A stretch of 63,846 nt of DNA from Vitrella brassicaformis CCMP3155 (lineage: Eukaryota > Protista > Chromerida): assembly GCA_001179505.1 (NCBI GenBank), contig CDMY01000251.1:1-63846 (forward strand), in the 5' to 3' direction. Below are positions 1,377 through 62,822 of this stretch, one piece after another; the stretch's first letter is position 1; every line of letters starts with the position of its first letter. A program made the translations under genes and the position numbers. A model generated the notes under the pieces. That model searched no databases and was not told the origin of the DNA. It worked only from the letters and a program-made list of their open reading frames with translations.

Positions 1377-2141
1377 TCACACAGAGAAGCCCGAGAGCCG
1401 GCGGTAGGGTACATTGCTGCTGTCCCCCGACTCAGATTTGCTGGTGTCCTCCGACTCACATTCATTGGGCTGGCGTGTCTCGTCAATCTCCTCGGCTTCT
1501 TCCTCCCATCTGTCCACGTAGAGGTCCAGAATCTCACTCAGCTCCGACGGCAGGACGATACCGCTTTCGTCCACAGGTCGGCTGCCGTCCTCACGGCAAG
1601 GTACGGGAGGCAGTTTCACGCCTGGATCGGACTTTGTTTTCCTCACGCCCAACTCCTTCACCAGAGTAGGATCAGAGGCTTCGATGTCCAGGGCGCAACC
1701 TTTTGTGTCGCCCTCGTAGTGCGTCAGGCGGCTCGACGGTCGGCTGTGGTCACTGGGCTGTGAGACGCTGGCCGTGACGGTGGTCGTGGTGTTGCTTGGG
1801 ACCCCTGTGGCATTGGCGATCTCCTTCTCTGAAGGCGGACAGCCTACCCCCCCTTGCGCGTCGCCATCTGCATTGTGCTGCGTCGTCAGGCGACTCGATG
1901 GGCAGCTGGCTGGTGGGGGAGACTCAGCGTCGTCGTCGTCGAGGGGCTCCTTCTCTGACGGCGGAGGAGCATCACCCTCGCCACATGCCGTGACTCTGGT
2001 GGCCTTGGGCCGGCGCAAGCCACGGGGGAAGGGGAGGCAGCCGCACATGAACTTGCGTTGGGGGCGCGGAGCCTCGCCGATGTGCCGCGCCTCACGCACT
2101 GCAGAGGCGCGAGCGGGACGGAGGCGAAGCCTTCGCTGCAT
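1377..2141 (-). CDS. Hypothetical low-complexity protein (Ser/Pro/acidic); start 2141 or 2048 (MCGC...)
   Basis: Long non-microsatellite ORF (1377-2195) with protein-like composition (…LYVDRWEEEAEEIDE…). No recognisable domain; 3' end may be spliced. Confidence 0.55.
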   Translation of the reverse strand: MQRRLRLRPARASAVREARHIGEAPRPQRKFMCGCLPFPRGLRRPKATRVTACGEGDAPPPSEKEPLDDDDAESPPPASCPSSRLTTQHNADGDAQGGVGCPPSEKEIANATGVPSNTTTTVTASVSQPSDHSRPSSRLTHYEGDTKGCALDIEASDPTLVKELGVRKTKSDPGVKLPPVPCREDGSRPVDESGIVLPSELSEILDLYVDRWEEEAEEIDETRQPNECESEDTSKSESGDSSNVPYRRLSGFSV

Positions 2142-2336
2142 GGGGAGTGGGTTGTAGCCTCGTAGGAGGGCTGATGGGTGGGGGACGAGTTGCAAAGGAC
2201 TTCGATGAGACGCGCGTTGAGACAGGTACAGAAAGCCGGTCTTCTCGAGCTGCTGATGGCTCAGAAGCTGCAGAAGCTTTGCAATTTGGCTCTTGCAACA
2301 CTCTTTCTACACTCTTTTCCTTTCGCGATCGAGAGA

Positions 2337-2344
2337 TGCGAGCT
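2337..2344 (+). promoter_or_regulatory. Candidate promoter element TGCGAGCT (hypothetical/SDR divergent spacer)
   Basis: Exact octamer about 80 bp upstream of SDR ATG 2426; recurs in other divergent spacers. Confidence 0.5.
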
Positions 2345-2425
2345 CAGAAATACTCAGGATCCGGAAAGGTACGCCACGGAAAGGTTCTGCAATGCATGCA
2401 GTTGTTGTTGATGTATGCAGGTCGG

Positions 2426-3767
2426 ATGGCTCTGACTCATTGTCTGCTGCTGATCTTCGTGCTGCCTCACTCTTCCCAGCTGCTGGCCGTATCGCTGCGC
2501 TCTCCGACGAGGCAATCCGCACCAGCCTTTGCCCAGATGAAAGGCAGCGTGCTTGTCACTGGTGCTGCGGGCGGCATCGGATCTGCGCTCTGCAAACTGT
2601 TCAGGGAGAAAGGATACCAGGTTTTTGCTGCCGATAGGAAGGCATCGCCTGCCATCGATTCGCTCAAGGCAAGAAACGAGCAGAGAAGTGACCGATGCAT
2701 GCCACTGGTTCGGTTGTGTTGATCATTGCAGGGCGACAGCAGTGTGGTGCCGCTTCCTGGTCTTGACCTGACGTCCAGCGAGTCCATCAAGCGGCTGGCC
2801 GACAGCCTCCTCTCGTCAAATGCGAAGCTCGACATTGTCATACAGAATGCGGGGGTGCTCGACGAGCGAGGCATCGATCTGTTTAACCTCGATTTCGATT
2901 CGATAAGAGGTGAAGTGATTTCGATTCGATAGATAAACACTTTGTGTATATGTGTGCTATGTGGTATGTGGTTGCGCCCCAGAGAGTATGCAGGTGAATG
3001 CCGTGGGCCCGCTGGAGCTCACTGTGGAGCTGCTGAAGCGGGACTTGGTCAGGTCACCTGGCGGGAAGATCGCCCTAATGACCTCCCAGGTCAGCCCGCT
3101 ACACATGGATGTGTTTGCTTGGTTGACGCATTGGGATGGGTGATCTGTGGCTGAATGGTTAGCTAGATGGCTCGATGGATGAACCACACAGAGAGATGGA
3201 TGGATGGATGGATGGATGGATGCAGATGGGAAGTGTCGATGACAACTCCTCTGGAGGATATTATGGCTACAGGATGAGCAAGAGTGCCATGAACATCTGC
3301 GCTAAATCCCTCAGCATCGACTTGAAAAGATACGGTCAGTCAGCCAAGCAAGACACACCCACACCCACACCTACACACCCACACACCAACCACCACCTTT
3401 TGTTTCTTGTCCTCTGTTCCTGCAGGCATTGCCGTGTGCCTGCTGCACCCAGGGTGGGCATGTGACAAAGGAGACACTCGCAGCCATCGAAGACAATTGT
3501 GTCGATCTGTTGTGTGGCGGGTCCATCAATCAGGTACGTGCAGACACAGATGACGGGTTACAATGGGAACATTAAGCCGGAGACCAGTGCTAAGGGACTC
3601 GAGGCTCAAATTGATGCTCTTGACATGACCAACACAGGAACATGGTGCGCCAGAAGCGAACGAGGAGGGGGGAGGCGCTCATTCACCAACCGATCGTTTT
3701 GCTCTGAGTGTGTGTGTGTGTGTGTGCTTGCAGGTGGAATTATAGAGGAGAAGTCTTGCCGTGGTAG
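2426..3767 (+). CDS. Short-chain dehydrogenase/reductase, CsgA (C-factor)-like, 7 exons
   Basis: Exons 2426-2668, 2732-2909, 2983-3089, 3226-3334, 3426-3453, 3534-3644, 3734-3767 join in frame. Motifs TGAAGGIG, NAG, YRMSK, HPGYVQTQM and C-terminal WNYRGEVLPW. First intron is GC-AG. Hydrophobic N-terminal extension (start could also be 2411 or 2537). Confidence 0.93.
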
Positions 3768-4122
3768 CACTGGCGCCTTCCGGTCTTGGTAGCCGTGTGT
3801 ACTTTGATAATGATGTACGTACAACGATCTTAAGAGAGTCCGTTTGACCATTGAGACTGACCGGTTTGCAAATCATGCGTGCGAGTTTCGACTTCACCCA
3901 AACCTTACGGTGAATCCCTCATTGGCCCAAGACACCATGAATGAGTCGGGTTGGTCGGGCCCTCACGCCGATGCAGAAACGGCGCAGAGAGGCCTCCCTC
4001 CCACCCTCTCTGTCTGTTCGTTCTGGTGTACCGTATCAATCACATGGCCCCCGGTGTGTGCGAATCCGTCTGCTGTGGCCGCCCGGCCACACTGGCACAG
4101 CCCCTGACCCGACATAAACTGA

Positions 4123-4458
4123 CCCCCCCCCCCCCCCCCCCNNNNNNNNNNNNNNNNNNNNNNNNNNNNNNNNNNNNNNNNNNNNNNNNNNNNNNNNNNN
4201 NNNNNNNNNNNNNNNNNNNNNNNNNNNNNNNNNNNNNNNNNNNNNNNNNNNNNNNNNNNNNNNNNNNNNNNNNNNNNNNNNNNNNNNNNNNNNNNNNNNN
4301 NNNNNNNNNNNNNNNNNNNNNNNNNNNNNNNNNNNNNNNNNNNNNNNNNNNNNNNNNNNNNNNNNNNNNNNNNNNNNNNNNNNNNNNNNNNNNNNNNNNN
4401 NNNNNNNNNNNNNNNNNNNNNNNNNNNNNNNNNNNNNNNNNCCCCCCCCCCCCCCCCC
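4123..4458. other. Assembly gap (300 N, 4142-4441) flanked by poly-C tracts (19 C and 17 C)
   Basis: Directly visible in the sequence. Confidence 0.99.
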
Positions 4459-5397
4459 TGGTGGATTGGTCCACTCATTCATGCATTCATTCATACGGAC
4501 GTACGGACACGCATGGCATGGACTCATATGGTGACTGACCAAATATCAAAAAACATGGAGCGAGGTGAGTGAGGTGGATGGATCGAAAATGCACAATACA
4601 CAATACACGTAGACACACATACGGAGGAGAGGCCGGCCCACCAGGGGTCAAAATTGGCCGGCACTCCACACTCGCACTCGCACTCAACTCACACCGACAC
4701 TGACTGACCGGAAAGGACACATTAAACCCACCCGCCCCCATTTCATTCATTCATTACACTCTCATGTAAACCAACCGGGGACATATGGATGGATGGAAGG
4801 ATGCGTAGATGGATGTGTGTGCAAGGAGTGAGTGAGTAAAAGCCGCGAGTGGGAGCGTTAGATATCCAAGCAGGCCGGGGGGGAGGGAGGTAAGCAAGGC
4901 GAGGAAGCGAAGGGAAGGGAAGGGCAGGGGGCGGAGAAGGCACGTGAACGCCCGTTATGGAATGAATGTTACGTACATGCATATGTATGTGTGGATATGG
5001 TCTGTCTGCCCACGTATACATGGAGACTTACGCACCTGTCGTTCATTAGCAAGGCAGCACACACACACTCACACACACCCAGACACTCTCATTCACCCCA
5101 CACAAAGCAAGCATAAGCCAGTCGTCCTGTGTGAGTGTCTCTGCAGCAGCAGCACCCACCAGCCGCCAAAAAGGGCCGACAGGTACTCACACAGACAGAC
5201 AGACAGACAGGGAGACAGACAGGCCACATCACACACGCTGAAGGCAAGAGTGACCAGTGCTAGACAGTGAGGGAGTGAGAGCGTCACGATTAGACCATGG
5301 TCGAATTGAGAATACACCAACAAACGTCCAAACCAAACAAGCCAGTCAGACAGTCAGTACTAGTGAGTGACTGAGTGAGTGGCAAACAAAAATAGCG

Positions 5398-5431
<34 letters not shown>

Positions 5432-8400
5432 CAGACAGACAACCAACCAACCAGCCAGCCAGCCAGCCAGACGTTCCTTCCTTCATTGCCAGGGTGAACC
5501 GTGGTGTGATGTGCCGTGTGTGCAGGCAGTGTCGTATGAAAGACGCGACGCCAAACACCAAACAGACATTCAGTCAGACAGACAGACAGACATTCGACAA
5601 CAACACACACGTACACGCAATCAGCCATGCCATGCCATCGAACCTTACCTTACTTACCATCCTCAGAAGAAAAAGATGCAAACAGGTCGGTCGGTCGGGA
5701 TCGGTCAGGCACTTGAGCAACACACACACACACACACACACAGACGAAAGGCTCGTACAGGCATGCAAGTCAAGAAAAATGGGCATCTCGGTGACCCCCT
5801 CCCTGACTCCCTGCCTTTCTTCTGGGTGGATGGATGGATGGACGGATGGATGGATGTCATCCACTCACTGCTACGGTGCATGGAGGAAGGAGGTAACGTA
5901 CCATGGGTGGGTGAGAGGAGGGAGGGGGACACCTGTGTATGGTCTGTGTGGTCCTCAATTACGTACTTAGGTGGTGGAAAAAGATGGATCGATGTCATGC
6001 ATGTCAGCTGGCATGCATGGATGGATGGATGGATGGATGGAGACATCATATACACGTACGTGTAGGCAGGTCAGGCCGATTCGCACCTCTCCTGTCTGTC
6101 CCCTTCGAACATCGATCCACGCAAGCAAACCAAGCGCAAAAATACGGTAGCCATGCATTCATCCACCCACCCGTCCATTCACGGCAGCCATGCCTCGGTC
6201 ATCCACGCAGGTACGCACGCATCACCATCACCACACGCAAGCAACGCTCGGCCATACTTGCTTTCGTCCTTTGAAACGGTCGGCGATTTGAAAACAGGCC
6301 CCATACACACGCATACACACAGACGCAAGCACTTACAGACAAGACAAGACAAGAAGACAGTCCCTACCAAGTGTGGAGTCAGAGAGAGAGAGAGAGAGAG
6401 GAAGATCGACACAGCGCAAGCAAGTTCCCTGTGTGAAAGTAATCCTTCCTTTCTGTCTTCAGAGGCTTTCCTTCGTTCCTTCGTGCTAACCTCCCCCTCC
6501 CACTCGCCCATCCATCCATCCACCCATCTGTCCGTCCACTGACTCAGCGACCAACCAGCCAGCAACACAGTCCGCACCACATCACTCACTCACATCGCAC
6601 GTCAGCCGGCCAGCCAGCCAGGCACCACACACCGACTTCGCTCGCACAACCATACAAAATGTACAGATGGATCGATCAATCGCTCAGTACGGCAAAAAAT
6701 GGCTCGCATGTGATGGATGGCATGTGCTATGCTATCTGTGCTGTCATGTCCTGTGCTGTCCTGTGCTGCGTGTCGGTGTAGGTGTAGATATGTACTGCAG
6801 GGTGTGCCGGCCATAGACAGACAGACACGACGCGTCTGTGGAGTGTGAGTGGATGACTCGCGGTTGGTGTGTGGCTGGTGGATGGATGGAAGAATGGATG
6901 GATGGATGGATGGGTGACACACGGAGAGAGAGGGGGACGTTAGATAGATACTTCGCCAGGCCAACCAGGTACTTGTGTACTGACTGCAGGCAGGCAGGCA
7001 GAGATATATCAACCAAAGACAGACAGGTAGGGTAGGTCGAAAAAGCGCAAGACAGCAAGACAGCAAGACATGCAGAAACCGATGCACACGCACCGCGCCG
7101 CACGCATGGATCACGCCACATTCGCACAACAAATGTATGGTTCAAGGAAAGAGACAGCGCAGCCACGCCCCAAACCTCTCAACCTGCTCAGACGCCTTCC
7201 GTCCCTCTCCCTTTAGCCTTGACGTGACGCTGAAAAAACAGGGCCGGGGACGCATGGAACAGGCAGGCAGCTTCGATTCGAAAGTCAGTTCGCTTGTTAC
7301 CAAATACACACCACACACACGAGAGCCAGGTAGTAAGTACTCCCCACAGTCAGTCAGCCAAGGTGATGCAAAGTCGGTCGGTCTGTCTGTCTGTCTGTCT
7401 GTCTGGGTGTTGGTGTTGGTCGGTCGAGGTGGCCGTCGCTTGAAAACCTTTCGGTGAAGGGCCGGCCACCCCACAAACAGCACAGCAGAGACAGACAGAC
7501 GCCAGCACCAGACAGAAGGACAAGATCAGACCAGGTCACCCACGCAAAGACCTCATGCGATGCATCCATCATCTCACTAGCCGCCCCTAGAGACAGGGGG
7601 CGACGCCGTCTCATTCAGGTGGCCAGGCGCACGTAAGGCAGGCAGGTCAGTCACAGGTAGGTAGGTTGGTGCTGTGTGTCTTTCGGTCAGCCAGTCCGTC
7701 CGTCCGTACATATCCACAAGACGAAAAAGATAGACATAGCCACATCGACATCAACTGCTGCCTCTCTCTCTCTCTCTCTGGTTGCATCAGGCCGGCCTCT
7801 CAGCAGCAGCATCCCAGCAGCAGCAGCATCAGCAGCATCAGCAGCAGCAGCAGCGTGGGTATCTCACACACTGATCTGAGCACTACCGTACATTAGGTGT
7901 TAGGTTCGTTCCACGAGAGATTGTGTGAGTAAAAGGGGAAAAAACCAGGCATCCAAGCAAGCAACAACCGACAAACACTTCTCGCGTCCTGTCTGGCACA
8001 TCACAACACAACAAAGGGATTCAAAAGCAGCCACCCAACCACCTCGCCCAACATACCTCCCTCGTATAGACAACAAAATCATACCCATACAGAGACACCG
8101 ACAGAAAGACAGACACGTGAAAACCTACAAGTCAATCAAGGGTAAACGAGACTGACTGACTGACTGACACCTGCACGCACACACATATAGATGACTCAAC
8201 TCCCCGCTGAGGCAGAACAAAATCGCTCCCCTGTTCCCTCCCTCCCTCGCCCCCTGTCTCCCTCCCTCCCTCCCGTGGTCCCCAAAATGCAGCAGGGCTC
8301 ACTTCCCTGAGGGAATGGCGGGCCCGCCCGTGGACGCACCACAGACGGGCCCCATGCAACAAAAGAGGCCCTCTGCCGGCTGATGCAGCCCCACCCCGAC

Positions 8401-11400
8401 CCGCCCCGCCCCCCCAGACTAGGTGTGTGAATGTGTGTGTGGTGTGGTGTGGTGTTATGTCATGACGAATGCAGTGGTGTGCATGGCATGGCAATGGCAT
8501 CACAGAACAGGGGACGTACTTTACTTACACATGCATGCACGCCTGCCTGCCTGCATGTATGAGCCGCAGAAAAATCATCTTCCTTCCCTCCCTCCCTCAC
8601 TCTGACTGCCAGACTGACTGACACCTGTCCGTCTGTACCAACCTTCACCCATTCGTTCGTTCATTCCGACCATACCTACCATACGCAAGTGACAGGTTGA
8701 GCGACGTAAGCCAAGCACGTAAGCAGGCAAGCAAGCAAGCCAGCAGGGGGGCGGTCTCAAGAGTTCCCTGGCCAGGGAGGGAGTGGGAAGCATACACGCC
8801 ATGGACCATAGACACACAGACAGACAGACAGACAGATCCACACATCCATCCATCCATAAGAGGGTCGACGAAACGTCTTAAAGAAAATACAGCACAGCCA
8901 CCACCCCAAGAGCAAGTGGCGCGTGCAAGGAGTTGCGGGCATCTACCTGCCGCCCAGAGATCGCAAGCGAGAGAGGAGTGAGTCAGTCAGTCACGTAAAC
9001 AGCTAGAAAGGAGCTGAGGGAGGGACGGCCAAGTGAGAGATGGGATGAATGGCCACAAGGGCGAGCGCCACACCACACAGGCGGCTAGCGAGGTAGGTAG
9101 CCACGCCTCGGTCGAGCGAGCAGAAAAGCGCAGCCGGGGCAAAAATTCAGGGGAGAGAGAGGGGAGGGGCGCCTGACTCCATCCATCCATATGTCCACTA
9201 GGTGTCGGCCGTCGTGATGTAGTCTAGTCACTCATAGGTAGTGGGTGGAGTGGGTGGGGTGAGTGGAGTGGAGAGGGTGACTGACTGACTGATTCAGAAA
9301 GCCGGCCAGCCAATCAGCCAGGTGCACCAAAGCCATGATATGAGCGTGTGGTGTGTGTGTGTATCTACCTGCCTCTCTCTCTCTGCGTGGGAGGGGAGGG
9401 ACTAAAGCAACCTCGGTCGCTCGCGCGCAAGCCCGATAGCAGGCAGATGTGAGCTAAGGGCGAGCCGATGTTGGACCAAAGAAGCAACCAACCTCGGCCT
9501 CCCGCTCCCCTCCTCCCCTGTCCTGTCTGTCAGTGTGTGTCCTGAGAAGCTAAAGCTATGGCCAGCCAGCCAGCCAGTAAGCCAGTGAGTGTGGGCGTGC
9601 GCGTGTGACTGAATTGTGCAATTGGACTCAAAGCGTGTCGACGTAAAGCGAGCGTGCTGCAGAAACAATTCGGCAATCAAGAGAAAGAGAGAGAGAGAGA
9701 GAGGGGAGAAAGGGATGACGGATCGCGGACGGATCGCATCGAATCGATGGGAGACAGCCAGGCAGCGTACCACCAACAGGCGAGGCGAGAGAAGGACAAA
9801 AAACTTGCGCCGAGGCAGACAGACGGAGAAAAGGCGAGAGAGAGAGAGGCCAGAAGCTAGCTTGAAAAACAATGAATGCACACAGCCTCTGGCTGAACTG
9901 AGCTGCTTCGATGGCAGGCAGTGAGACAGACAGACAGACGCGCGAGAGGGCCTAGCAAGACAGACACGCTGAGACGGACAGCAAAGAGTTGAAAGAGTTG
10001 GTACACACACATGCATTGAGAGGTCGATTGACGCATGGATGGAGGAATGCACTGACTGCAGGCAGGAGAAAAGGCCAGCCGCTCACACAATGTCACACAC
10101 ACACTCACACTCACACACGCGCCAGGCAGGACTCACACCGCAGCAGCAACACACACACATGACCGACCGACCGACCGACAGTATCCGCAGCCCCCAATCG
10201 AATGACAGTTAGATATGCACATACACACATACACACACGCATACACGTATGTTATAATACACCAATCATCATCTCTTGGACAAGAAATGCCGCCCAGAAA
10301 TACCAACAACCGCCCGACCGACCGACACATCTCCCTTCCCTCCCCTTCCCACTCCCTCCCCCCTGCTGTGCTATGCTGACTGACTGACTGACTGACGGTA
10401 GGTCGCTATAATATCCAGTAATATTGATTGTCTACCCGTATAGACTTCCCTTGACTCCATCATGGCCATGATGGATGGACAGACAGCTTCTTGATGGTGG
10501 CCGGGTCGAGCGCTGAGAGGTGTTCTTAGTTGTAGGCAGAAGGTAGGCAGAGCTGGTAGCTTACGTGCACATCACTTAAGTAGAAACAAGCCATATAGAC
10601 AAGACAGACAGACAGACATACATGATGAAAGATCCATCATTATCGAGAAACAAGGGCGAGGCAGCCAGGCCAGGCAGGGAGGTCAACAGGCCGGGCCGGT
10701 GTGTCGCCCGACCCGATCGTAGCTAGCTACCGATCTAAGGTAGGTAGGTACGTACCAGCCGGTACACCGCATAGCATCTGCACATGTTTACGCACACGTA
10801 CACGCCATCAGCTCCTACACGCCGCCAGCACACACACGTACGTCAGCAGGTCAGGTCAGTCCTGGACGGACTGACAGGTAGGTGTGTCCTCACTCACAGA
10901 GAGAGATGTCATAGAGAGCAACCAGCCAGCCCAGGCAGACAGATAGATAGATGATCGATGCGGAGGGAAGTCATGCCATGCACGTACGAACACAGCCATG
11001 CAGCCATCAGTGTAAGGCTTGGTCGTCCGTCCGTCCGCCCACCCACCCATCGGCAGCAGGCAGGCAGGCAGGCAGGAGGCAGCTGGCCAAAAATCCAGCA
11101 CCCCAGTCGAGAAGAGTAGGTAGTGGCAACCATAGCATAGCATAGCATAGCATGTATCGAGAGCGATAGATAGCATAGCCGCAAAAATCAGGCACCAGGC
11201 AACGACCGACGGATGGATGGATGGATGGACGGATGGATGGATGGATCACCTGCTCGTCAATCAGGTCACCAGTCAGTCAGGTATGGGCGGGCAGCCACGC
11301 ACAGCACACGAAGGCAGGCATAGCATGCGCACACACAAACATCTCAGGGCAAGCGTCAGGTAGGCATCAGGTGCAGGTATGTGTGAGGACCGGTTAGCAC

Positions 11401-31990: not shown

Positions 31991-32022
31991 TGCGGGATGC
32001 GTCTCCTTCCCTCGCAGTCTTA

Positions 32023-40545: not shown

Positions 40546-40572
40546 GGAGGATCGCTGCGTTCCTCTAATGCT

Positions 40573-45040: not shown

Positions 45041-45048
45041 TGCGAGCT
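45041..45048 (+). promoter_or_regulatory. Candidate promoter element TGCGAGCT (TTGCGAGCTG)
   Basis: In the spacer between divergent ATGs 44719 and 45504. Confidence 0.45.
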
Positions 45049-49308: not shown

Positions 49309-51970
49309 TCACCAGAAGAGGGGCCACTTCCGTCTGGGCGAGAGGTTGTTCATCAGCAGGGCGACGCCGAGCAGCACGATCCACCCGATGAGGAAGGGCG
49401 AGACGAAGAACCAGAAGGTGCCGCGGTGTACTGCAGGGGCCGCCTGCAGGAAGGCGATGGGCGTGCTCGCCGCGGGGGGGCAGGTGATGCCCTGAGCGAT
49501 AGTGACGACAGACAGACATGCAGGGAGGGAGGCAGGAGAGCGGAATAAGTGGACGAATGCATCGCGTGTTGCGAGGGGGGACGGTGGTGCTTACAATCTT
49601 CGCCATGCCGACGACCGACACCGTCATGCACAAGGTCGCGCCAAGCCTGATACACAGACACCCACACAAGCTCTTGATGTTTTGACCTCTCTCTATGCGT
49701 CCGTCCCCGTGTGCTTATTCCCTGGTTGCATTGCAACCAACCTCCCTCACCAGAAGGGCAGTATCGGGTAGTGCCAGGGGTGCCCCGACTTGCCGACGTC
49801 GGTGATGAAGGAGAAGACGATCGACACGGTGAGCGCGAACAGGGTGGACAGGAAGAGAATCCGCGGCTGGCCGAAGGGCGAGGCCGGCGCCACGAAGTAG
49901 AGGACCGCCATCGCACCGAATGGTCCGATCAAATGGAACTGAACACACGAAGTCGTTGGGAATACACGCTTGTGTCTCTGTGTCTGTGTGTGTGGTTTTG
50001 TAACCTACCGAGTCGGGCGAGTCTGAGAAGGCGTAAGTCTGCAGGAGGGTGAGGATCATGAACGACAGAAAAACTTCCACGGTCGCCAACACACAGTGGC
50101 GGTCATCCTGCACGTAGCACCACACACCAAACAACACATGACAGACACACCACACCCTCGGAGCAGTCAGTGACACCCACCCACCCACCTCGTCTCGCTC
50201 ACCAGTGCCTTAGCAGGGTGTCCCTTGGCGCCGCGCCACTTCTTGAAATAGGCCCAGGGGTCGTTGATGACCGCCATCAGCCACCGGCGGTCGTACGGCT
50301 GCATCCCCGCCTGCGAGTCCTCCACCCCCAGGCGCATCATCTCACCCTCCTTGGCGGCGAGTGCCTTGAGTCCCCCAGCCCGGAAGTGCTCCTGCAGTTT
50401 GCGCCATCCGTGGTGCACCACGACCATCCGATGGCGGGCGAGGGCCCCCTTGGCACCGCACTTGCGCAGGTCCCACTGCACCACCTTGAGCGCTGCCTTG
50501 AGGTAGGCGTCGAACAGCGGACCTTTCATCCCCGGCACGTCGCTGTCAACCTGATCAGTAATTGCACCCAGGGAGGGAGGGATGGTGCGGTGTGGTGTGG
50601 TGTGGTGTGGTGTGGTCCCACCGTCCACATGTGCACGTACATACCCGTTGCTCCCTGCGTGTGTAGACGACGAACACGGCGATGAGCTCCCGTGTGTCGG
50701 TCAACATCAACGTGCTGCGGCGCCGCGTCAGCACCATCGACTGCGCTACGTTGCCGATAGACGCCCTTCCGCCGTGCCGATGCTGCAGCAGAGAACTCGC
50801 CGCAGCCATCTCACCTGCGGTGACGCCACACACACACACACATAGTTAAACACATGGGAATGTTTGCTTGTCCCGTGTGTGTGTGTGCGGCGTGTGTGTG
50901 TGACTGACTGACTTTGCACGGCAGCTGCAGCGCTTTCCGAGGGGACGGTGCCGGACCTGGCGCGGGGAGGGCGAGGTGGTGGTCGCTGGGGTCGTTGCGG
51001 CCGCTGCCTGATGCCGCCTGCGGTCATGGCGAAGATGGGTATCGCGCACGAGGTGTGGAACAGCTCCCTCGCCGGCGCATCCAGCGGCGTGGAAGGGTTC
51101 TCGGGGTCGTCAAACACCTGACAGACATGACGCACACACACACACAACGCAACACATGGGTGTGGTGTGGTGTGTGAGAGGTGTTTTGGTTTAGTAAGTG
51201 TGGTGCCGTGCCGCGCACCCCCCCACTCACCTGGTCGAGGACGTTCCACTCTGTTTCTCCCTCCTGCCACGCGCGGCCAGCCAAACCCACACCGGGAGAC
51301 AGCCTACACACATGGCACACACGACACACACACACAGCCCAATGCCCATGTACAAACTAGCTGGGCTGGCCGACCGCATCTCATCTCGCTTACGTGATGT
51401 TCTTCTCGCTGGGCAATTTGGCGAATGCCTGGAGCTTCTCGACGTCGTCCCCCGCGCCCGTGTTGGGCCGCATCACCCCGTCCACACGCGAGAGCGACGC
51501 CATTCCGTCGTTGGGCGTCCACATCTCACCGTACACGAACCCGCTGTCAACCAAATCCTCAAGGTGCCTGCGCAAACAACGCTGCACGGCCGACAGATCC
51601 TCGGCGGCCAACGCCTGCACACACGCCACACACACGTGTGACACACCCAACCAGGATGACGCCATTGCAATCCTGCCTACGCACCTTCCTCTCCCACACG
51701 TACCTGCAGTCTGGTGGAGTAGCTGTCGTCGATAGCGGGGCTGTCTGGGGGCACGGCGCCGTGGATGACGTTGTACGCATCGCCCACTGTGGTGGCGCAT
51801 CGTCTCAGGGGAACGCCGTCGATACCGGGCTCGAGATGGTCACGGTGCTCACGCCGGGAGGGTGTCAGCGCCCCACCGCTGGCGGCAGATGAGTCGCTGT
51901 CGAGCAGCAGGGGGGTCTCCAGGCTTGCCAGTGAGCCCGAATGGCTGAAGGGGTACATGACGCCCGCCAT
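49309..51970 (-). CDS. GAF-like domain + HPP-family (nitrite-transporter-like) membrane protein, 10 exons
   Basis: All junctions phase-matched by hand. GAF-like YGEMWTP…LSPGVGLAGRAWQEG…SCAIPIF…ELIAVFVVY; then YFKKWRG, GPFGAMAVLYFVAPASPFGQPR, GITCPPAASTP and LLMNNLSPRRKWPLFW* typical of HPP proteins. Confidence 0.85.
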
Positions 51971-52135: not shown

Positions 52136-52586
52136 ATGGTGAGTGAGATCAAGCCGTTCAGCCCTCTGGTTCACATCTCCCAGTTTGGCAATCTCGCGTG
52201 GACGCTGCTCCTCGTCGGCGCCTTGCTCGCGGCCTGGTTCTTCATGTAAGTGACACGCAGAGGCGCCCAGAGATGAGCACACGCGAGACGGAAGATCGAT
52301 CAGCATGCTTGTCGTGTTTGTACGTGCCCTGCCTTCCCTTGTGTTGTGTGGTCATTTCAGCTACGAGGTGACAACAGGCAAGTTCGAGCGCAGCCTGCTG
52401 AAAGAGCTGGTCATCGCCCTGTTGTCGTCCGTCTTCCTCGGTCAGTCAGTCAGTCGGCAGACAGACACGGGCACACAGCAGGGAGCAGCCCATCTCTGAA
52501 TGTCTGTCTGTCTGTGTGTATGTGTGTATGTGTGTGCAGGTATCGGTGGCATGTTCCTCTTGCTGTCCATCGGTCTCTACTTCTGA
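52136..52586 (+). CDS. TMEM258: Oligosaccharyltransferase small subunit OST5/TMEM258, 3 exons, 78 aa
   Basis: Exons 52136-52245, 52361-52440, 52540-52586: MVSEIKPFSPLVHISQFGNLAWTLLLVGALLAAWFFIYEVTTGKFERSLLKELVIALLSSVFLGIGGMFLLLSIGLYF*. Confidence 0.93.
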
Positions 52587-52672: not shown

Positions 52673-53604
52673 ATGGCGTCAAGTTTATCTGTCGAGTGCG
52701 TCCATCATCTGTTGGGGTTTGTGGATTGCGGCAAGACCCTCACGGTGTGCGAGCGTGTGGCCACCTTGTGGCGCCAGGCTATACACCTCGCCGACCAGCA
52801 GCTGTGGAGGCATATGTGTGACCGTCACAACATATGGCAGACCGGCACTCGGTCAGTGAGCTCCCCATCGACGCGCGAGCAGTCGCAGACGTCGTCTCTG
52901 TGTGTCTATGTGTGTGTTTTGTGTGTCAGATCTCGTGGCCGGCTGCCGTGGAAGACTCTGTACAAGCAGCGGCTGTGCCTCGAGTGCTGCCAACCTGCCG
53001 CTGTCATACTCAATGGAGAAAAACGTAAGGCAACCAGCCGGTGAGGTGTGTGTCATGTGACGGCATGTTTGTATGGTGTCGTGTCGCGCGGCTGCAGGCA
53101 GCTTGTTTCCCACATTTCCCCTGTGTTACGCGTGTCTGAAGGTGGGAGGAGGGCGGAGGGGGGAGGGGGGACACACACACACACAGACTCGCCCACTCAT
53201 CACATGATCCATGTCATCTGTCGGTGTCGTGTTGTCCATCCGTCTGTTCGTCTGTCGGGCTGGCAGACCAATCCGAAGAACAAGGACTCCTTCCCTCGCG
53301 TCAACAGAAACCTCCACGGCACTGACGACCTACTCCACTTCAAGGTAGCCACGACACTCCTACACGCACTCCAACACGCAACCATTGATGCCTCGTCTGT
53401 GTGTGTGTGTGCATTCAGCTGGTACTGGAGAACTATCAAAACGACATAGTGACGGAGCGGAAGCAGAAGGCCAAGAAGCGTGCCGCTGCTGCTGCCGTCG
53501 CCGGTGGTGGTGGCGCAGGTCGTGGTGGGGGCGTCACACGCGGCCGTGGTGGCCGGGGTAGGGGGAGAGGTGGGGGTGGCACGTACATCACGTGGAGGGT
53601 GTAG
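52673..53604 (+). CDS. F-box-like protein with CxxC…CxxC module and RGG tail, about 5 exons
   Basis: LSVECVHHLLGFVDCGKTLTVCERVATLWRQ…LWRHMC (F-box-like), PWKTLYKQRLCLECCQP…FPLCYACLK, C-terminal GRGGGVTRGRGGRGRGRGG. Confidence 0.7.
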
Positions 53605-54336
53605 CTAGCGTCAATGGTCATGTGTGTCCGTCCGGATGGGCGTGGCCTCTTTTCTCTTGTGTGTGGGTCGTTTGCATTGCATCTGTCTGGGTCGTGTCTG
53701 TCGAGTTGTGGTCCCTCTCTTGTGCATCACGCGCCGAGGAGGGACCATTGTCAGAATCACGCGACGAGGACGGTCTGACGATGGTCGGTCCCTCCTCGTA
53801 GCGTGGTGGATTGGCAGGGCGGCGAAGCACATCCGACACGTGGCAACGATGAGTGACGGCGTGATGCGGTGGGTGAATGTGCACGATGGATAACATCTGG
53901 GCGCGACGGGAGTCTCTCTCCTCGTGTGGATGAGTGCCTGGTGTCCGGTTGCACGTGTGAGTGTGTATGTGGTGTGGTGTGGACGCCATGTGGTGTAGGT
54001 TTCTCCCGCAATGTTCGTAAGCATTGTGCGGCAGACCTGCACCGCAGAGAGGGCTTCCACAGCACAGCACACACACATCACCAGGTGCACGGAGCACACT
54101 GGTGTGAGTGAATTAGCCAGCTCTCAGCGATGGGGCCGACAAATTGTGTTCTGTGGACACTGCACGTTTGCCATCGTGTTGCTATGGATGATCGTCCTTT
54201 CTCCCCGCCCCCTTTCACCGCCTACACATGCTCCCTCATTATGTGTGCCTGAACAGACCTGATTGTGTGAGGCTCACACACACAATGAGCACTGACAAGG
54301 CACGAGACATGAGCCGCGGTGTGAGGTGTCTGTTAG

Positions 54337-56367
54337 TCAGGCCGGCTCATATCCCATGTCAGCCTCGTCCTCAGCGCCCTCGGGCCAGGCCCAGTCGCTC
54401 TCATCTCTGTCGCCCATCAGCTGACACACACACACACACGTTTCCGCACGGACGGAAGTGCTGAGAGTGCATGCGCGCCTCACTTTCTGTTTGAGGAGCT
54501 GTGTCTGTATGGCGTATTTGGCCGTGTAGTAGTCCCTCTTGGCTGCAGTGCGCTCCGCCTGCGCCACACAGACATTCACTGGAGCATATGTGTAAGTATG
54601 TATGTCTCGGCTGGCATTGTGGTGTGGGTACTATGGCTTGGTTGATATCAGCCTCAAGCTTGGCAGCCGTCTTTGCCAGCTGGTCCTCGCCCTCCTGCCA
54701 CTGGCCGTACTCGCTGCATTCATTGCATGGCGACACAGAGACATACACATCAATCGGCGCCTCCCTCCCCCTGTGTCTCACCCACCGTTCCGCATCATCG
54801 ACTGCTCTCTGCGCCTCGGCCTTCTTCTCTTCCAGCCCCTTCATAGCACTCGACACCCTACCCACTGCGTGCTGACGAGCCAAGACACACAAATTGGTGC
54901 CGAGTGCGTGTATGTCTGTGTCTCCGCACCTCTTTGGCCTTCTCGACCTCGTCGATCTCGGCTGACCTGATTGAGGTGAGGCATGCATGGCATGGAGGGA
55001 GGCATTCAAAGAAGGGCCTGGCCTGTCTGGTTGTCTCTCTGTCTGTCGGTCTTACTGTATGTCGCGATATTTCTTGAGGGACGCGTTAGCAAGGGCCTCC
55101 TGCTCACGCCTTCTCTGAGCATCCACCAAACCAACAGAGCATCCAGCCGGTTTCAAAGGTTGGTCAGTTCGCGTATGCGCTAAGTATGTTTCTTGCCTGT
55201 AGTCTCCTCTGGTACCCGCTGAGGCGGGCGAGGGCTGACCCATACTGCTGGTTGACCGACTCAAACTGACCACACCACAAACATGGAGGGAAGTGGCTTA
55301 TTCTCATCACGTGTTAGGCTTTAATTGAGGTTACTTTTTCGCGTGCTTGTTTGTACGCGTTCTTGGCTTCCTTGAACGATTTCTGCGCCTCGCTCAGTCT
55401 GTCCCATGCCTCCTTCATCGCTGTCGACGACTGCACATATGCACACGCACAGAGGAGGCGAGCGTCTGCTCGTGCCGTGGTCCTTTCCTTTGCCCCACTA
55501 GGTCCTTCTTGTGCATGGCATCTCTCGCCGCCTCGTGGTAGTGTCTCGCTGCCTCTGCATCAGAACAATTCCCATGAAATTGTGTTTAGGTGTGTGTCTT
55601 CTCTCGATCAGCGTACGTTTCAAAGCGTCGACTGTGAAGAGGTACTTCTGTACCTCTTTGGCCGTGTCGGCATGCATCATCTGAGCATGCTGCGAGAAAC
55701 AGGCCAGCCAGAGGAGCCGATTCATGCGTGTGGATACCAGGTCTACATACTTACGTACTTTGATTTTGGTTGACATGGCTTGGTGGACGCGGTCCTTCAG
55801 ATCTGGGGGCGCGCCATGCCACAGTGATAGCTATGCATAGCTATTCAGCGATCTTGCGGCCAGCTTACGTGCGATGCGGGCCTCCACGTTAGCCTTCTTG
55901 CCCGCCAAGCGATGGATCTCGCCTGCAAAACCACTGACGCATTGTTGTCTTGCTCATCGATGAGTGTCTTCTCTGACCACCAAGTGCTCTGATGTTGTCC
56001 TGTTCGACGACCTTCTGATGCATTATGGACGCCACCTGTGCAGCCAACACGCACGACACGACCATGAAGAGATCTCATTGATGCAGGGCGGTCGGCAGCT
56101 GCCTACATACGTCCTGTAGGTGTTGGTGGGCCTCATCCACAGCCACGCTCAGCTGGTAACGGAGCTCCTGTACGGGTACGTATACAAGATTCACGAATTG
56201 ATCCACGTGCACTGCATAGCCATCGGACGCATCTCGATCACCTCTTCTTTCTGGTCCGCTACATGGTATCGGTCCGCAGGTGCCTGAAGGGGATCCGGTG
56301 CCCTGGTGCTGAGTCCCTTAGCAACGGCCATCCACAAGCTGCACGCGAGGAGCGCCAACCAATCCAT
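54337..56367 (-). CDS. Secreted long coiled-coil protein, about 13 short exons
   Basis: Signal peptide MDWLALLACSLWMAVAKG. Phase-matched helical exons (ELRYQLSVAVDEAHQHLQD; AMKEAWDRLSEAQKSFKEAKNAYKQAREK; AMKGLEEKKAEAQRAVDDAER), ending DMGYEPA*. GC-AG intron 55196-55115. Confidence 0.72.
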
Positions 56368-56442: not shown

Positions 56443-57428
56443 ATGCCCATATTCGGCAGAAAGAAGCAGGATGGCAAGGCCAGCGACAGTCCTGCTGCCG
56501 CCAGCCGCAGCCCCCTGCGAGTCAGCGACCAGAAAGGCACAGAGAGCCCGTCCTCAGCTGTGGCGTCGACCAAGTCCACAACAGTCAACGACTTCGTCAG
56601 CAAGGCCAAGCAGGGCGGCATCAGGCCGAGTGGACCTGAGCTAGTTGCGTACGCAAGGTGCCTGCGGGAAGGCTGAGCACACTGTACTTGCTTGGGCCAT
56701 GGTGTGTGTTGAGTGTGTGTGTGGTGGAATGGCGCAGGTATCTGGGTATCGACGCCGTGACCGATGCCGACCTGATGTGGATAGCAGAGGAGTGCCTCAA
56801 AGCACCGCTACCACCAGGTGACAGACAAATGGGACAAAACGGGCGCGTGTGTGTGTATTGAATGTGGCCCGTTGGGCGAATGACGTCGCGCAGACTACAC
56901 GGAGCATTTTGACAGCAATGACCGGATCTTCTATTACAACGCCACCACGCGCACCAGCACCTGGATCCACCCACTGGAAAGCCTCTACAGAGACACATAC
57001 AAGGAGATCAGGACCTTCAGAAACCAAACAGAAATGACCGCACAAGAACAGTACGCAAACCAACATGAGATCGATCGCCTGTGAGACGCCCGCACTGCGT
57101 GTATACGAGGGCCTCTGTGTGTTGTGTGTGGTCGCAGGCTGGACAAGCTCTATGAGCTTCGGGATCAGGTGGCCAAGTGTGAGCGGCAGGTGCAGCGTGC
57201 GATGAAGGAGTGGGGGGAGCACACCGACAGCGGCGGACAGCTCTTCTACTACAACAAACGGGACGGCAAGAGCTACTGGACTGACCCCAGGCCGCCCAAA
57301 TTCGCCCTTTACGCCCTCAAACAAAAGACACTCAAGATATGCGCACAACATGCAGGTCAGGTAGTCACAAAATTCAAAAACATCCACACTCTCCCAGCAC
57401 ATGTAGCACCCCCTCTCTCCCTCTCTCC

Positions 57429-57461
<33 letters not shown>

Positions 57462-58578
57462 TGTGTTGATCAGGTGTGCCATTGTCATCCCTGCAGGAGC
57501 CCTCAGACGACGAGCAGGACCGATCCCTCCCGCAACGGCCGTCGGCACCGCCACAAGCCGCGACATCCGCCGACAGGGGGGAGGACACACTGCCACCCGG
57601 GCAGGGCAGGAGAATAAGGGGAGCGAGGCAAGCGGCTGCAACATCAGAGTGGCGGACGGAGCTGGAGCCGCCTGTCCAGGCCGCCAGAGAGAGGCCGCAG
57701 GAGAGAAAGTGAGCTTCTAATATAGTAGGGAGAGGCAAGGCATGTGTGTGGCTGGTGGGTGGGTGGTAGTGTCCTTTGCCCATTTCCATGGGTGGGTGGT
57801 GTGGTGTGTGCATCTCTCTGTGAGTCTTTCTGCCTCTCTGCCTTTGTGTCTGTGCTATGTATAGGTCTGAAGGTCATGTTTATGAGTACATGGAAGACGA
57901 GGGCGTGCTGAGCGATGCCGCGGGGGTGCTCAGTGACGGCGGACACCAAAAGAAGAAAAAGAAAAAGAAAAAACGTTCGCACACACACACACACACTCCA
58001 CTGACACTGAGACAGATGTCTGTCTGTCTGTCTGCATGAAACACGTGTGCAGTGCGCCCACCAGCGACAGACGGGGAAGGCAGCCCCACAGATGAGCAGC
58101 GACACTTCTCGCCTGCACCGGTATGGCGTCTCCGCGCCTCACCCACTCCCTTTGTACGTCTGTGTGTAAATGGCTTTCACTCCTCCGTCTGTCCTTTCAG
58201 CAACCTGTTCCCTTCGCCCCTGCGGAGTCTCAGCCGGCCGTGGGCGGACCCGCACCAATGCAGGCTTCCGGTGGGGATCGATTAACTAACGAAAGAAAAC
58301 AAGAAGGGACCCGCCAATGATTGACGGATGGATGTGTGTATTTGCTTTGCGCCATGTGTCAGGATTTGGGGCGCTCAGCGAGCAGGGGCGGGCGAGGTAA
58401 GCACCACACACATACACACACACTATGTAATCTGTGTGTAGCTATGTGTGAATGTGTGAATGTGTGCAGGGTGAAGGCGGGTGTTCGCTTGGCTCCCCTT
58501 GACGCCAGGCTGCCCGCCCTGCCCACACTTAGTGGGCCGGGGACGGGCCTGCCAATGCCTCCCGGACTACTCAGGTAG
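56443..58578 (+). CDS. WW-domain protein with CEP164-like N-terminal module and a second WW domain
   Basis: ELVAYARYLGIDAVTDADLMWIAEECLKAPLPPDYTEHFDSNDRIFYYNATTRTSTWIHPLESLYR (CEP164-type helix + WW); second WW EWGEHTDSGGQLFYYNKRDGKSYWTDPRP; poly-Lys tract. Distal small exons tentative. Confidence 0.78.
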
Positions 58579-59759
58579 ACAGACAGACGGACAGGTGGAC
58601 GTCTTTGCTCTGATATCGGCTGCTAGCGAGCCCAGGACTCACATGCCGTGCCGTGCCGTGCCGTGTGTGGTGGGTGGGGGGGCGGGTGGGTCTATCTGTG
58701 TATGTGTTTTTGCGATTCCTCCTCTGCTGAAAACCTCATGACACGTACGTGGCTCTTTCTGAGTGGATGTGTGTATTCATCACCACTCGTGCGCCTGACC
58801 CGTGTCGCATGCACAATTGCATCCATCCATCCATCCATCTTGCACTCACTCTTACAAGACGCACGCAGCCCCACACAGCAAAGACTGACTGACTGACTGA
58901 CCAAATAGCGCGTAAACACACAGGACGTGGGCCAGCCTGTGTGGGTGGATGGGTGGTGCGTGCGTGCGGGCGTCATGGAAGCAGCTTCAGGCAGGCAAAA
59001 AAGTGCTCTTCCGTCCTTCGTCTCCTTGTCTGTGGCTGGGGAGGAGGGAAGAAAAGAAGAGAGGAAAAACATCATCGTCAGCAGCAGCAGCAGCAGCATC
59101 GGTACACACTTAGAAACCGGTAGCTCGCGAGCTGTCCTGTCCCTCTGTCAGCCATCCATCAATCAATTGTCCGGCCGGACACAGACACGCACACTCTCTC
59201 TCTCTCTCTCAAGCAGCCAAAACTTCCCTGGGCCTTCCTTCCCTGTCGCTTCCTTCCTTCCTCGAGTGGCACACTAGGTTAGGCTGCAACAAATATGTAC
59301 GAGTACATACATAACAGACAGGCAGGAGGGAAGGGGTTGGGCTGGGTTGGGTTGGGTTGCCTGCAGACATACAGACATACATACACAATAGCCTATCAAA
59401 ACCGCTGACAGCTTCACTGTACAATGCAGACAGACAGACAGACAGCACTCACTGACCGATACATACGAACAGCATATGAACGGGTGTCGCGGTTTCTTGC
59501 TGGTCCCCTTTGGCAAGGCAGAGGAGGGCAAACGGGGCACCGTTCCCTCAGACAAGAGGGAACACTGTCACGTATCCCCATCCCGACGGAGCAAAAAGAG
59601 CCACGCAAGAACCGAACCCACACGCATCACACCGAGAAATCCGCCATGAGAAGAGCCATACAGTAATTCAGTAGAACCGAGAATAGCCGAAAGGACGAAC
59701 CAGCCCAAAAGGCAAACCCATCCCATCCGGGTACCCTCGCTCCCTCCTCCCTCCCTCCC

Positions 59760-60131
59760 TCACTCCCCCTTGCCCTCCTTCTTCTTGTTTCTATGGTTCT
59801 TGACTTTCTTGCTGGCCCAGTTGGTGATCCAGTGGCAGTGCATGGCGAGGGAGAGCGTCACGAACACCAGCGTCACCGACAAGCGTACGTCGGCCATCCA
59901 GATGCGGTGGTAGAGAAGCAGCCCCAGCACACAGGTGTGCCACACCACACGCGTCAGCCAGAAGGCGATGCCGAACGACCAGTCGAACCGCCACGGCACG
60001 TGGATGTTGCCTGGGAGAAAGAGAGTGAGTGAGTGAGCGAGGGGACGCACACACGCACACGCACACGCAATGAAACGAACGGAAAGCATCCATGTTGGTG
60101 TCTGATGTGCAGTGCTCATCTCTCCTCTCCA

Positions 60132-60165
<34 letters not shown>

Positions 60166-60957
60166 CGTCTGTCTTCTCTTTCTCTCACCGATTCCGAGCA
60201 TGACAGTGGGTATCTCGTCGATGCCGAAGAGCATGAAGATCCACACTTGCTTGGACGCCAGAGCATACAGCATGATGACCGTATACACGCCGTGGTGCAC
60301 CCACCCAGACAGCACGTCGATCGTCCGCGGGTAGAACAGCGTCCCCAGCACGCAGTCCGTGTGCAGGGCCGCCACAAACAGCACGCACACCACCTGTAGT
60401 GCCGTCGGGTTGCTCGCAACCACCGCGCGAAACCCGGCCCCCAGCAGGTCGCCCTCTGCCAGCGTCACCGGGATGACGTAGACGCCACACACAGTGAGCA
60501 CCACCCCACTGGCCGTGGTCAGTATCCAGCCGTCAGCCTTCTGCTCGTCCTTGTACTTTGCCCCCAGGGCCCTGATAGCCATTCTGCTCACCAAGAACAC
60601 GGCCGCCTGCAGCTGCACCAGCCCGACATACCACGCGAAGAACCACGGCGAGTCGAGCATCAGCATGCTCCGCAGCGGCACGTCGCTGAAGGGCCAGATG
60701 ACGACATAGCCCACGACGCAGGCCATGAGGAACCACCCAAGTCCGACGATGGGCGAGAGGCCCTCGGCGGGAAGGGGCGACTCGTATCGCGAGTCGATGG
60801 ATGACACGGATGTGGCTGAGGGGGAGTGGGAGGGCTTGGCGGGGATCTGCAGGGACGAGAGGGGCGGCTCCAGGGCGGAGGAGGGTGCATTGGGCGTCGC
60901 CGGACGGCCGCCATTCAGCCCTGTGTGCACCACGTGGGGATTCTCACTCACTACCAT
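59760..60957 (-). CDS. TLC (TRAM/LAG1/CLN8) domain multi-pass ER membrane protein, 2 exons
   Basis: Intron 60188-60011. Motifs DCVLGTLFYP, SGWVHHGVY, EIPTVMLGIG and FGIAFWLTRV; Lys-rich tail KKKEGKGE. Confidence 0.87.
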
Positions 60958-61213
60958 GGTGAGTCAGTCAATCCGTGAATCAGTGCCGACAGACCAGACA
61001 GCAGGAAGAAGGACGGTCGCTACAATGCTGCAGACCTGCGAAGCACACCAGCAGACGCACATTTGCGGAACCGGTGAATCAATACGCACCGGGCTCTGTC
61101 TGCGTCGCATCGTTACTCACTCGTGGCGATTATATTTGCGATGGCAGTTTAGATAGATAGACTGTCGTTCTCGCCGCATTCTTCCTGTTGTCGTTCTGTC
61201 CCTCGTCGTTCCC

Positions 61214-61221
61214 AGCTCGCA
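61214..61221 (-). promoter_or_regulatory. Candidate promoter element TGCGAGCT (TTGCGAGCTG)
   Basis: AGCTCGCA on + strand in the spacer between ATGs 60957 and 61320. Confidence 0.5.
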
Positions 61222-61319
61222 AAAGGCCTAGGGTCTTCCCCCGTGAAACCGCAACAACCCACCGCGACAACCGAGACCACGAGAGCACAAGGAGAGGAAG
61301 AGATGATGTTAGTGTGATC

Positions 61320-62822
61320 ATGACCAGCGGTTTTGTGACGACGGCATTTGTCTTGGCCGTGCTAGTCCTCTCGCGTGATGCCTCTGCGCACGTCCCGCAC
61401 ATCCGGACGGCGGCGGCGAGAGATGCGGCGGAAGGCACCTCATGCGGCAACAACACCTCCTGCGGCTTCATGGCCGAGGCGCGCACACACACGGAGGAAC
61501 AGGGGTTGACCGCCGAGCAGCTCGTTGCCCCAGACACGGTGGCTGAGCAGAGGAGGTTGGGGAGGCACGAGAGGGGATCTCACGGACAAGTCTTCGGGTT
61601 TGTGCTCTTCTACGGGTACGCAGGGGGAGGAAAGGAATCTCAAGCCAACTGTGTCACTTGCTCGCTCTATCTGTGTGTGCGCGCTGCGCTGCAGGTTGTT
61701 TTTGCCCTTCCTAGTCTACGTCTTCTGGCGAAGTCGGAGATGCGCTCAACGAGGCCGCAGCGACGATGCCAATCATCCCATGCCCCTGTCACGCGTCTAC
61801 CGCCGATACGCGCAGGCACAGCAGCGAGGGGCTCTGGCATACGGCCTGAGCCGGCTAGGCCCCAGCGGCCGCTCAATCTCCCGAAGACCGAGGGGCAACA
61901 ACAATGGCGGAGGCGATGTGGCGCCGACGTACGCCATCTTTGTGTCGCCGTGTGTGTTGCCGTACGTGGCGAGCGATGGCGACAGCGTGTGGGAGGGCGA
62001 TCTGGTCGATCTGCCGGAAGAGGGCGAGATCCACAAAATGAGCGGTGAGGAAGGGAGGGCGGGCGGGGTGACTGACGTGGTTGTGCCTGGTTTGTTGTGC
62101 ATGTGGCTTGGTGAACTCGATCATGTCATGCAGGTTTGGCTGATTTTGTGGAGTGTCGCGTGGCGTCTTTCCCCGACACCATCCCCATCGAACGGATCAA
62201 CAGCACCTACTTCAAGTTCGTCGACCCCGTTGCAGCAGCAAAGGCCGATGCCGGCCAGGAGATCACCCCCACCGCCCCCACCGCCCCCTCTCTCACCGAC
62301 ACCCCCGTCCAGATCCCCACACCCGTCAACACACCCATCGGCGAGCCAGCCGCCCCCGCCCCCGCCCTCCCCGCGATACGCGTCGGCGACTCCCCCCAGG
62401 AGCTCACCCCCCTCCCAGTCTTACCGGCGAGTCAGCTGTTCGCTCCACCGATATCCGCCTCACCGTTTGGCTCCCCCAGCCACTCGCCCTCCCGCAAAGC
62501 CACATGCGGCGTGTGTTTCGCCAACACGCCCACGGCTTTGTTCGGTCCGTGTGGGCATGGCGGGTGCTGTGTGGAGTGTGCAGCGATCATCCTGGTGCTG
62601 CCGTTCACGAAAGGCCGGCGACGGTTTGAGCCGCCGTGCTGCCCCGTGTGCCGGACGCACATCGACCAGCTGCTGGTGATTGAAGAGCCGGAGCCGCCTG
62701 GGAGTGGTTGGCAGGAGGGGCAGGGGGAGGGTGAGGCAGAGGGGGAGGGAGCGAGGGAGGCTGGTGGCGGTAAGATGGCTGCTCAGGTGGTCATGGAAGT
62801 GAGATCTGTCCAGAAGGAGTGA
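61320..62822 (+). CDS. Type I membrane RING-HC (C3HC4) E3 ligase candidate, 3 exons
   Basis: Signal peptide MTSGFVTTAFVLAVLVLSRDASA; TM helix VFGFVLFYG|LFLPFLVYVFW formed across intron 61616-61694; RING CGVCFANTPTALFGPCGHGGCCVECA…CCPVCR. Confidence 0.85.

Follow-up and report, generated by a model that had tools for sequence, protein, structure and literature searches.

Introduction

Gene order and orientation in eukaryotes are usually near random. Head-to-head pairs with bidirectional promoters are known from animals, yeast, plants, Plasmodium and Toxoplasma, where they form a minority, roughly a tenth to a quarter of genes. Apicomplexans have a near-random gene order, and dinoflagellates carry one-way arrays. 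Here we describe gene orientation in the chromerid alga Vitrella brassicaformis CCMP3155, in the first 63,846 bases of contig 251 (the window) of an assembly with 1064 contigs and 72,700,666 bases in all. Neighbouring genes in this window lie almost always on opposite strands and form ten head-to-head pairs. As in the pairs of animals, yeast, plants and the two apicomplexans, the 5' ends are less than 1 kb apart, in one short GC-rich region; unlike there, head-to-head pairs take in 20 of the 22 genes.

Orientation biases have been described in several other lineages. In brown algae (Ectocarpus; Phaeoexplorer preprint 10.1101/2024.02.19.579948), adjacent genes lie on opposite strands in "greater than 60%" of cases at most, divergent intervals are shorter than tandem ones, and divergent pairs share nucleosome-depleted regions. 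The window resembles these genomes in having opposite-strand neighbours above 50% and short divergent intervals; it differs in reaching ~90% locally, and no shared 8-mer has been described for brown algae, which are stramenopiles with much larger intergenic regions. Dinoflagellates (relatives within the Myzozoa), kinetoplastids and Amoebophrya, with 98% of its genes in co-oriented blocks (PMC7789003), also have strongly non-random orientation, but of opposite polarity: their same-strand blocks are long, whereas the longest same-strand run in the window is two genes, which is no unidirectional or polycistronic array. For Vitrella itself, one sentence of the genome paper states, as "data not shown", that genes less than 1000 bp apart are head-to-head more frequently than chance would give (Woo et al. 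2015, eLife 4:e06974, PMC4501334). That statement concerns the same organism, the same direction of bias and the same compact genome; it covers only closely spaced pairs, and near-total alternation, long microsatellite 3' spacers and a promoter word are not reported there. Our literature search found no paper giving orientation numbers for Vitrella. The window is a much stronger local version of the orientation bias known in Vitrella and brown algae.

Gene orientation alternates along the window

The window has a G+C content of 58% and abundant short tetranucleotide repeats. Scans for tRNA genes and Rfam families gave no matches in it, and a tandem-repeat scan found nothing bearing on the alternation. 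Coding strands were called with a hidden Markov model (HMM) of seven states (non-coding, and three codon phases on each strand) using third-order periodic Markov chains; it was self-trained on the window alone, and the gene models of the original prediction were not used. The HMM returned 57 coding segments; between 1386 and 62819 these form 20 strand blocks in strict alternation. Detected coding sequence amounts to 21 kb, and coding open reading frames (ORFs) have G+C contents of ~0.65, ~0.48 and ~0.72 at the first, second and third codon positions. Splitting the minus block at 22.7-28.3 kb and the plus block at 52.3-53.6 kb, each into two, gives 22 genes, numbered G1 to G22 from the left, in the order - + - + - - + - + - + - + - + - + + - + - +. 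Neighbours are on opposite strands in 19 of 21 cases (P = 1.1e-4), in 19 of 20 when the weakest gene (53452-53605) is left out, and in 13 of 16 (P = 0.011) in a conservative set of 17 strong genes. The original prediction had listed 22 genes with 19 of 21 neighbours opposed; the independent HMM, with the two blocks split, gives the identical order. The alternation in the window is confirmed: it is real and goes well past what chance would give.

For 14 genes, the strand is supported by evidence that does not come from the HMM. Pfam matches fall on the predicted strand in nine (adh_short, zf-CCCH, WS_DGAT_cat, His_Phos_1, Pam16, TM_HPP, Ost5, WW and RING finger families); these searches were done exon by exon on the enclosing ORFs, and two genes score below the cut-off (Pam16 with 24.3 bits against 30.3, WW with 25.9 against 26.9). 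Two single-exon genes have exact public protein records (1380-2141, minus; 40573-42222, plus, the latter also with a RAP match on the predicted strand). The remaining 28 of 30 look-ups of single-exon candidates returned no exact record, and few were expected because 95% of genes have introns. Two annotated Vitrella proteins were placed by tblastn on the minus strand at 31044-31843 and 54340-55680, the second of which confirms the weakest minus block, and distant homologues back the strand of the minus gene at 22.7-26.5 kb.

One way to obtain such a pattern falsely would be for gene calling to merge the exons of tandem genes or to pick up shadow ORFs. Block counts alternate by construction, eight genes have no outside support, and the HMM made one strand error: its plus segment at 49277-49492 was discarded, since the opposite strand there encodes the last TM_HPP exon of a minus gene (49315-49506), and with it went a possible extra plus gene. 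Against this, none of the 14 genes with independent strand evidence conflicts with the calls at gene level, and the gene number equals that expected from the published density, 20.0 for a window of this size. Vitrella has 22,817 genes, whose medians are 7 exons and a coding sequence (CDS) of 1199 nt, and neighbouring genes are separated by a median of 92 bp (Woo et al. 2015, PMC4501334). Under random orientation, 19 switches at P > 0.05 require ~30 or more genes, a number far in excess of the published density, so merged tandem genes cannot explain the pattern; the detected coding sequence, only 21 kb, would also have to accommodate them all.

Splice signals and collinearity with homologues show that two long minus-strand models, G3 and G5, are each a single gene. 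In G3, the ORFs are linked by a canonical GTAAGT...CAG intron (17539-17621) located exactly where coding potential ends, and the block at 15.6-18.7 kb is one gene. G5 (22690-26492) consists of four ORF pieces. Homologues of 1000-2000 aa run collinearly with two of them, at 25.8-26.6 kb and 24.6-25.8 kb; in the last ORF, coding potential extends 240 nt upstream of the first ATG and is preceded by a GTAAGG...CAG intron at ~23.6-23.83 kb. Because of these splice signals, the in-frame join of two ORFs and the collinearity, we treat G5 as one gene; the block at 22.7-28.3 kb is thus two genes, with G6 a separate one upstream in tandem that ends at 26871. That a start-region word turns up in the spacers predicted to be 5'-5' but is missing from the 3'-3' ones (see below) also speaks against a gene-calling artefact, which we regard as very improbable.

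A second possibility is that gene orientation in the genome as a whole is only weakly biased and that the window happens to contain an alternating run by chance. The measurement comes from one window, extremes are expected among the ~1100 such windows per genome, and long same-strand runs occur among the strand marks listed for contig 7. A value of P = 1.1e-4, however, predicts only ~0.1 such window per genome, and a head-to-head excess is stated in the genome paper (Woo et al. 2015). A chance run is accordingly improbable.

Divergent spacers are short and convergent spacers repeat-rich

Ten junctions are divergent, with 5' ends adjacent on opposite strands by the HMM, Pfam matches and protein records. 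Their CDS-to-CDS spacers measure ~0.07-0.76 kb (median ~0.41 kb, n = 10) and are shorter than the convergent spacers (0.39-12.4 kb, median 1.48 kb, n = 9; Mann-Whitney P = 0.001); between tandem genes, the two spacers come to 378 and 952 nt. Within pairs, the distance from start codon to start codon is ~70-820 nt, and since the start sites must lie closer together than the start codons, all pairs have their 5' ends within 1 kb. Perfect simple repeats make up 11.3% of the convergent spacers, which total 24.5 kb, compared with 3.8% of the divergent spacers and 1.8% of coding sequence. These values bear out the earlier claim that divergent spacers are short (75-784 bp) and that most of the long microsatellite spacers (up to 11.8 kb) are convergent. 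Introns have more T than A and more G than C on the sense strand; an intron-like skew enters the convergent spacers from both flanking genes and flips within the spacer, as expected if transcripts run into the spacers.

The longest convergent spacer, between G2 and G3 (3144-15591, 12.4 kb), has tetranucleotide microsatellites, with (CAGA)n and (GGAT)n as the only repeat families found, and no coding potential (the highest log-likelihood ratio, LLR, is 15 and belongs to a CAG run). Within it lies the assembly gap, 300 N at 4142-4441 with C-runs on either side. Coding potential is absent for ~1 kb on the left side of the gap and for ~0.4 kb on its right, no gene model spans it, and ORFs run across it only because a stretch of N holds no stop codons. 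Sequence may not be continuous over the gap; the gap lies in a non-coding spacer and affects at most one junction, so that a wrong join would cost only the G2-G3 junction and the length of the 12.4-kb spacer, while the rest stands. From the gap onward, this spacer shows a minus-sense, intron-like skew throughout: the eleven kb at 4442-15591, which give no coding signal, have a uniform plus-strand excess of A over T (skew 0.19-0.28) that begins at the gap. One possibility for this segment is a long non-coding transcript from the minus strand, another an extended 3' region.

An 8-mer is concentrated in divergent spacers

An unsupervised count of 8-mers over the independently defined spacers ranked TGCGAGCT first. 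Seven of the 10 divergent spacers contain this word, whereas none of the 9 convergent ones does (Fisher P = 0.003), and seven of its nine exact copies fall within the 11% of the window that is divergent spacer (binomial P = 6e-6). The seven are at 2337-2344 (plus, between G1 and G2), 28698-28705 (plus, near the G6-G7 junction, ~290 nt inside the putative G7, its place relative to the start being ambiguous), 32023-32030 (minus, in the G8-G9 spacer at 31844-32323), 37761-37768 (plus, between G10 and G11), 40538-40545 (minus, between G12 and G13, with 27 nt left to the start codon on record for G13), 45041-45048 (plus, between G14 and G15) and 61214-61221 (minus, between G21 and G22). The other two lie at the tandem junction from G6 to G5 (26574-26581, minus, 82 nt upstream of the G5 start codon) and in a G5 exon, the latter matching approximately the chance expectation. 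The genome as a whole holds 7692 copies, against 2061 of the reversed word, a 3.7-fold excess. Because of the copy at the tandem junction at 26574, we take TGCGAGCT as a mark of gene starts that is not specific to pairs; its placement fits what shared promoter regions would look like.

The same word bears on whether each spacer holds one promoter region or two. Alternation could be real and yet reflect two independent one-way promoters set back to back in each spacer, with the order kept for insulation of 3' ends or arising from neutral rearrangement in a compact genome. That the orientation of TGCGAGCT is not tied to the nearer gene, that it marks the tandem start of G5 as well, and that paired genes appear functionally unrelated would all suit such an arrangement, as would the doublets of the word elsewhere in the genome if they represent one copy per gene. 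Among the matches listed on other contigs, two copies often lie 7-40 nt apart, pointing the same way or opposite ways (for example, 38781/38790 on contig 7 and 178403/178413 on contig 22). Several spacers are nevertheless too short to accommodate two promoters comfortably (~70-285 nt at G6-G7 and G1-G2), the distance from the word to the G13 start is 27 nt, and most spacers that bear the word hold a single copy. We consider back-to-back promoters less likely than one shared promoter region per pair.

Two further words were noted. The palindrome AGCTCGCGAGCT, made of two overlapping 7-mer cores of TGCGAGCT, lies at 59122-59133 in the middle of the convergent spacer between G20 and G21; no coding signal was found near it, and the site might be an unannotated start region. 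GCGAGAGAT has four copies in the window, at 52129 and 61416 and, as reverse complement, at 37790 and 55520, three of them in divergent spacers. It was dropped as a spacer-specific word owing to the copy inside exon 2 of G19 and a genome-wide enrichment of only 2.5-fold (872 copies against 349 of the control), and is at best a minor start-region word.

Proposed organization and its scope

Taken together, the data favour an organization of 21 or 22 protein-coding genes as ten head-to-head pairs with shared bidirectional promoter regions and with 3' ends in microsatellite spacers, a reading to which we give a probability of about 0.62. Each start region would be one nucleosome-free promoter region from which RNA polymerase II departs both ways, and transcripts would terminate between convergent 3' ends, in the longer spacers rich in microsatellites. 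Alternation is probably kept because intergenic DNA is almost absent from this genome and one open promoter region can serve two genes, and because read-through would be kept off the next promoter, with collisions confined to the long 3' spacers. The original prediction had invoked compact bidirectional promoters: its structural part stands, given ten divergent pairs, short spacers and TGCGAGCT in seven of them and in none of the convergent ones, while firing in both directions and co-expression are what we infer from this architecture.

Several observations weigh against this organization. Eight genes, the weak G18 among them, are called from coding statistics, and the HMM was trained on the same window to which it was applied. 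Exact copies of TGCGAGCT are missing from three of the ten divergent spacers, and one copy sits at a tandem junction and another within an exon. Paired genes have no obvious shared function, with the Pam16-like/RAP pair as a possible exception. On contig 7, sparse 5' splice-site marks, among the matches listed, include same-strand runs of 4-10 kb, so the genome-average alternation may be below that of the window.

How much weight the finding carries will turn on how common alternation is across the genome. Strand markers drawn from splice sites and k-mers reached only 60-70% purity in cross-validation, and a genome-wide orientation test based on them was dropped because the correlation was too weak to tell alternation from random order. 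We tentatively suggest, at somewhat below even odds, that the whole Vitrella nuclear genome follows an almost strict alternation of shared promoter, gene, long low-complexity termination zone and gene, with 80% or more of neighbours on opposite strands, tandem order being counter-selected because of sloppy termination that needs kilobase-scale microsatellite spacers. If so, no eukaryote would be known with a more extreme orientation grammar; it would lie far above the ~60% of brown algae and be the mirror image of the one-way arrays of dinoflagellate relatives. A genome-wide value of ~90% would make Vitrella a natural system for the study of divergent-promoter function, of transcription termination in a very compact genome, and of why close relatives took opposite routes in gene orientation. 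On a practical level, the strand rule and TGCGAGCT can aid gene-start finding and the correction of gene models in chromerids, and the short divergent spacers would be ready-made two-way promoters for transgene work in chromerid algae.

Individual genes

The first pair combines G1 (1377-2141, minus), a single-exon gene for 254 aa with an exact protein record and no Pfam family (LLR 63), with G2 (2426-3143, plus), a short-chain dehydrogenase-like gene of at least three exons in which adh_short/Epimerase matches lie in two collinear exons. G2 covers only positions 3-91 of the adh_short profile; in the 1 kb ahead of the gap there was no sign of the catalytic part. Upstream of the first gene, at 571-683, lie 5.3 copies of a 21-nt unit.

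Across the long spacer, G3 (15592-18704, minus) encodes a CCCH zinc finger protein, with zf-CCCH in two exons (LLR 269 and 88). Its partner G4 (19210-22202, plus; approximate ends, from HMM segments) is wax-ester synthase/DGAT-like (WS_DGAT_cat, E = 1.7e-8). Two features of the long minus-strand gene G5 stand out: an in-frame stop at 25788-25790 amid continuous coding potential, and a 38-nt GT..AG interval at 24547-24584 that joins two ORFs exactly in frame. These may reflect very short introns, sequencing error or a decaying gene. G6 (26871-28336, minus), in tandem with G5, comprises three minus HMM segments (LLR 29, 18 and 15) with an uncertain start and no family match. It is paired with G7 (28405-29558, plus; start uncertain; LLR 21 and 42), which encodes a Tyr/Gly/Pro-rich repeat protein with a 33-nt coding repeat at 29445-29512; a Pfam scan of the frame at 29265-29555 gave no match.

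G8 (31041-31843, minus) encodes a HIT-type zinc finger protein of 211 aa, to which the annotated Vitrella protein P0010 maps in two pieces. Facing away from it, G9 (32324-33544, plus; LLR 110) belongs to no recognised family and has G+C contents of 0.61/0.59/0.75 at the three codon positions. In the next pair, the histidine phosphatase gene G10 (36070-37694, minus; His_Phos_1 match, three HMM exons) stands beside G11 (38117-39340, plus), which has three plus segments (LLR 20, 39 and 19), an uncertain start and no recognised family.

The pair at 39732-42225 joins G12 (39732-40352, minus), a small Pam16-like gene (E = 3.5e-5, below cut-off; LLR 31), and G13 (40573-42225, plus), a single-exon RAP-domain gene of 550 aa with a RAP match and an exact record that includes a transcriptome source. 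Pam16 belongs to the mitochondrial import motor and RAP to organellar RNA metabolism, and this is the sole pair with a plausible common compartment. No family was recognised for the members of the following pair, G14 (43322-44901, minus), with ~4 exons (LLR 35, 66 and 22) and introns of ~80-115 nt, and G15 (45504-47202, plus; LLR 19 and 31), whose first-exon ORF (45441-45899) has a coding-like G+C pattern.

G16 (49312-51970, minus) encodes an HPP-family membrane protein, with collinear TM_HPP matches at 49750-50004 and 49315-49506, and is paired with G17 (52305-52499, plus), encoding Ost5, oligosaccharyltransferase subunit 5 (E = 5.9e-7). Downstream, G18 (53452-53605, plus) is the weakest model (LLR 16-21 on the plus against 15 on the minus strand, no family match) and may not be a separate gene.

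G19 (54340-55680, minus) encodes 235 aa with a deaminase-like SPCNEC motif, and the annotated Vitrella protein P0009 maps to it in five pieces. Its minus-strand segment 54653-54865 encodes IDVYVSVSPCNEC, resembling the zinc-binding PCxxC strand of cytidine deaminases; matches to deaminases are weak (APOBEC_N, E = 0.006; APOBEC3G in PDB, E = 0.3). The partner gene G20 (56443-57720, plus; three plus segments) carries the sub-cut-off WW domain (E = 1e-5). A 338-aa ORF antisense to G20 was discarded, as it has no coding score and is not among public protein records. The last pair consists of G21 (59760-60957, minus), a two-exon gene of no recognised family (LLR 97 and 23; intron 60009-60194), and G22 (61400-62822, plus; start uncertain), which encodes a RING finger protein (zf-C3HC4_3, E = 1.1e-9).

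Elsewhere in the assembly, contig 1 (4683 bases) is a single long minus-strand coding stretch and uninformative on neighbours. The intron consensus is AG|GTGAGT at the donor and TGCAG|G at the acceptor, and many introns, such as that at 60009-60194, have a CA/GA-rich 5' half and a GT/pyrimidine-rich 3' half.

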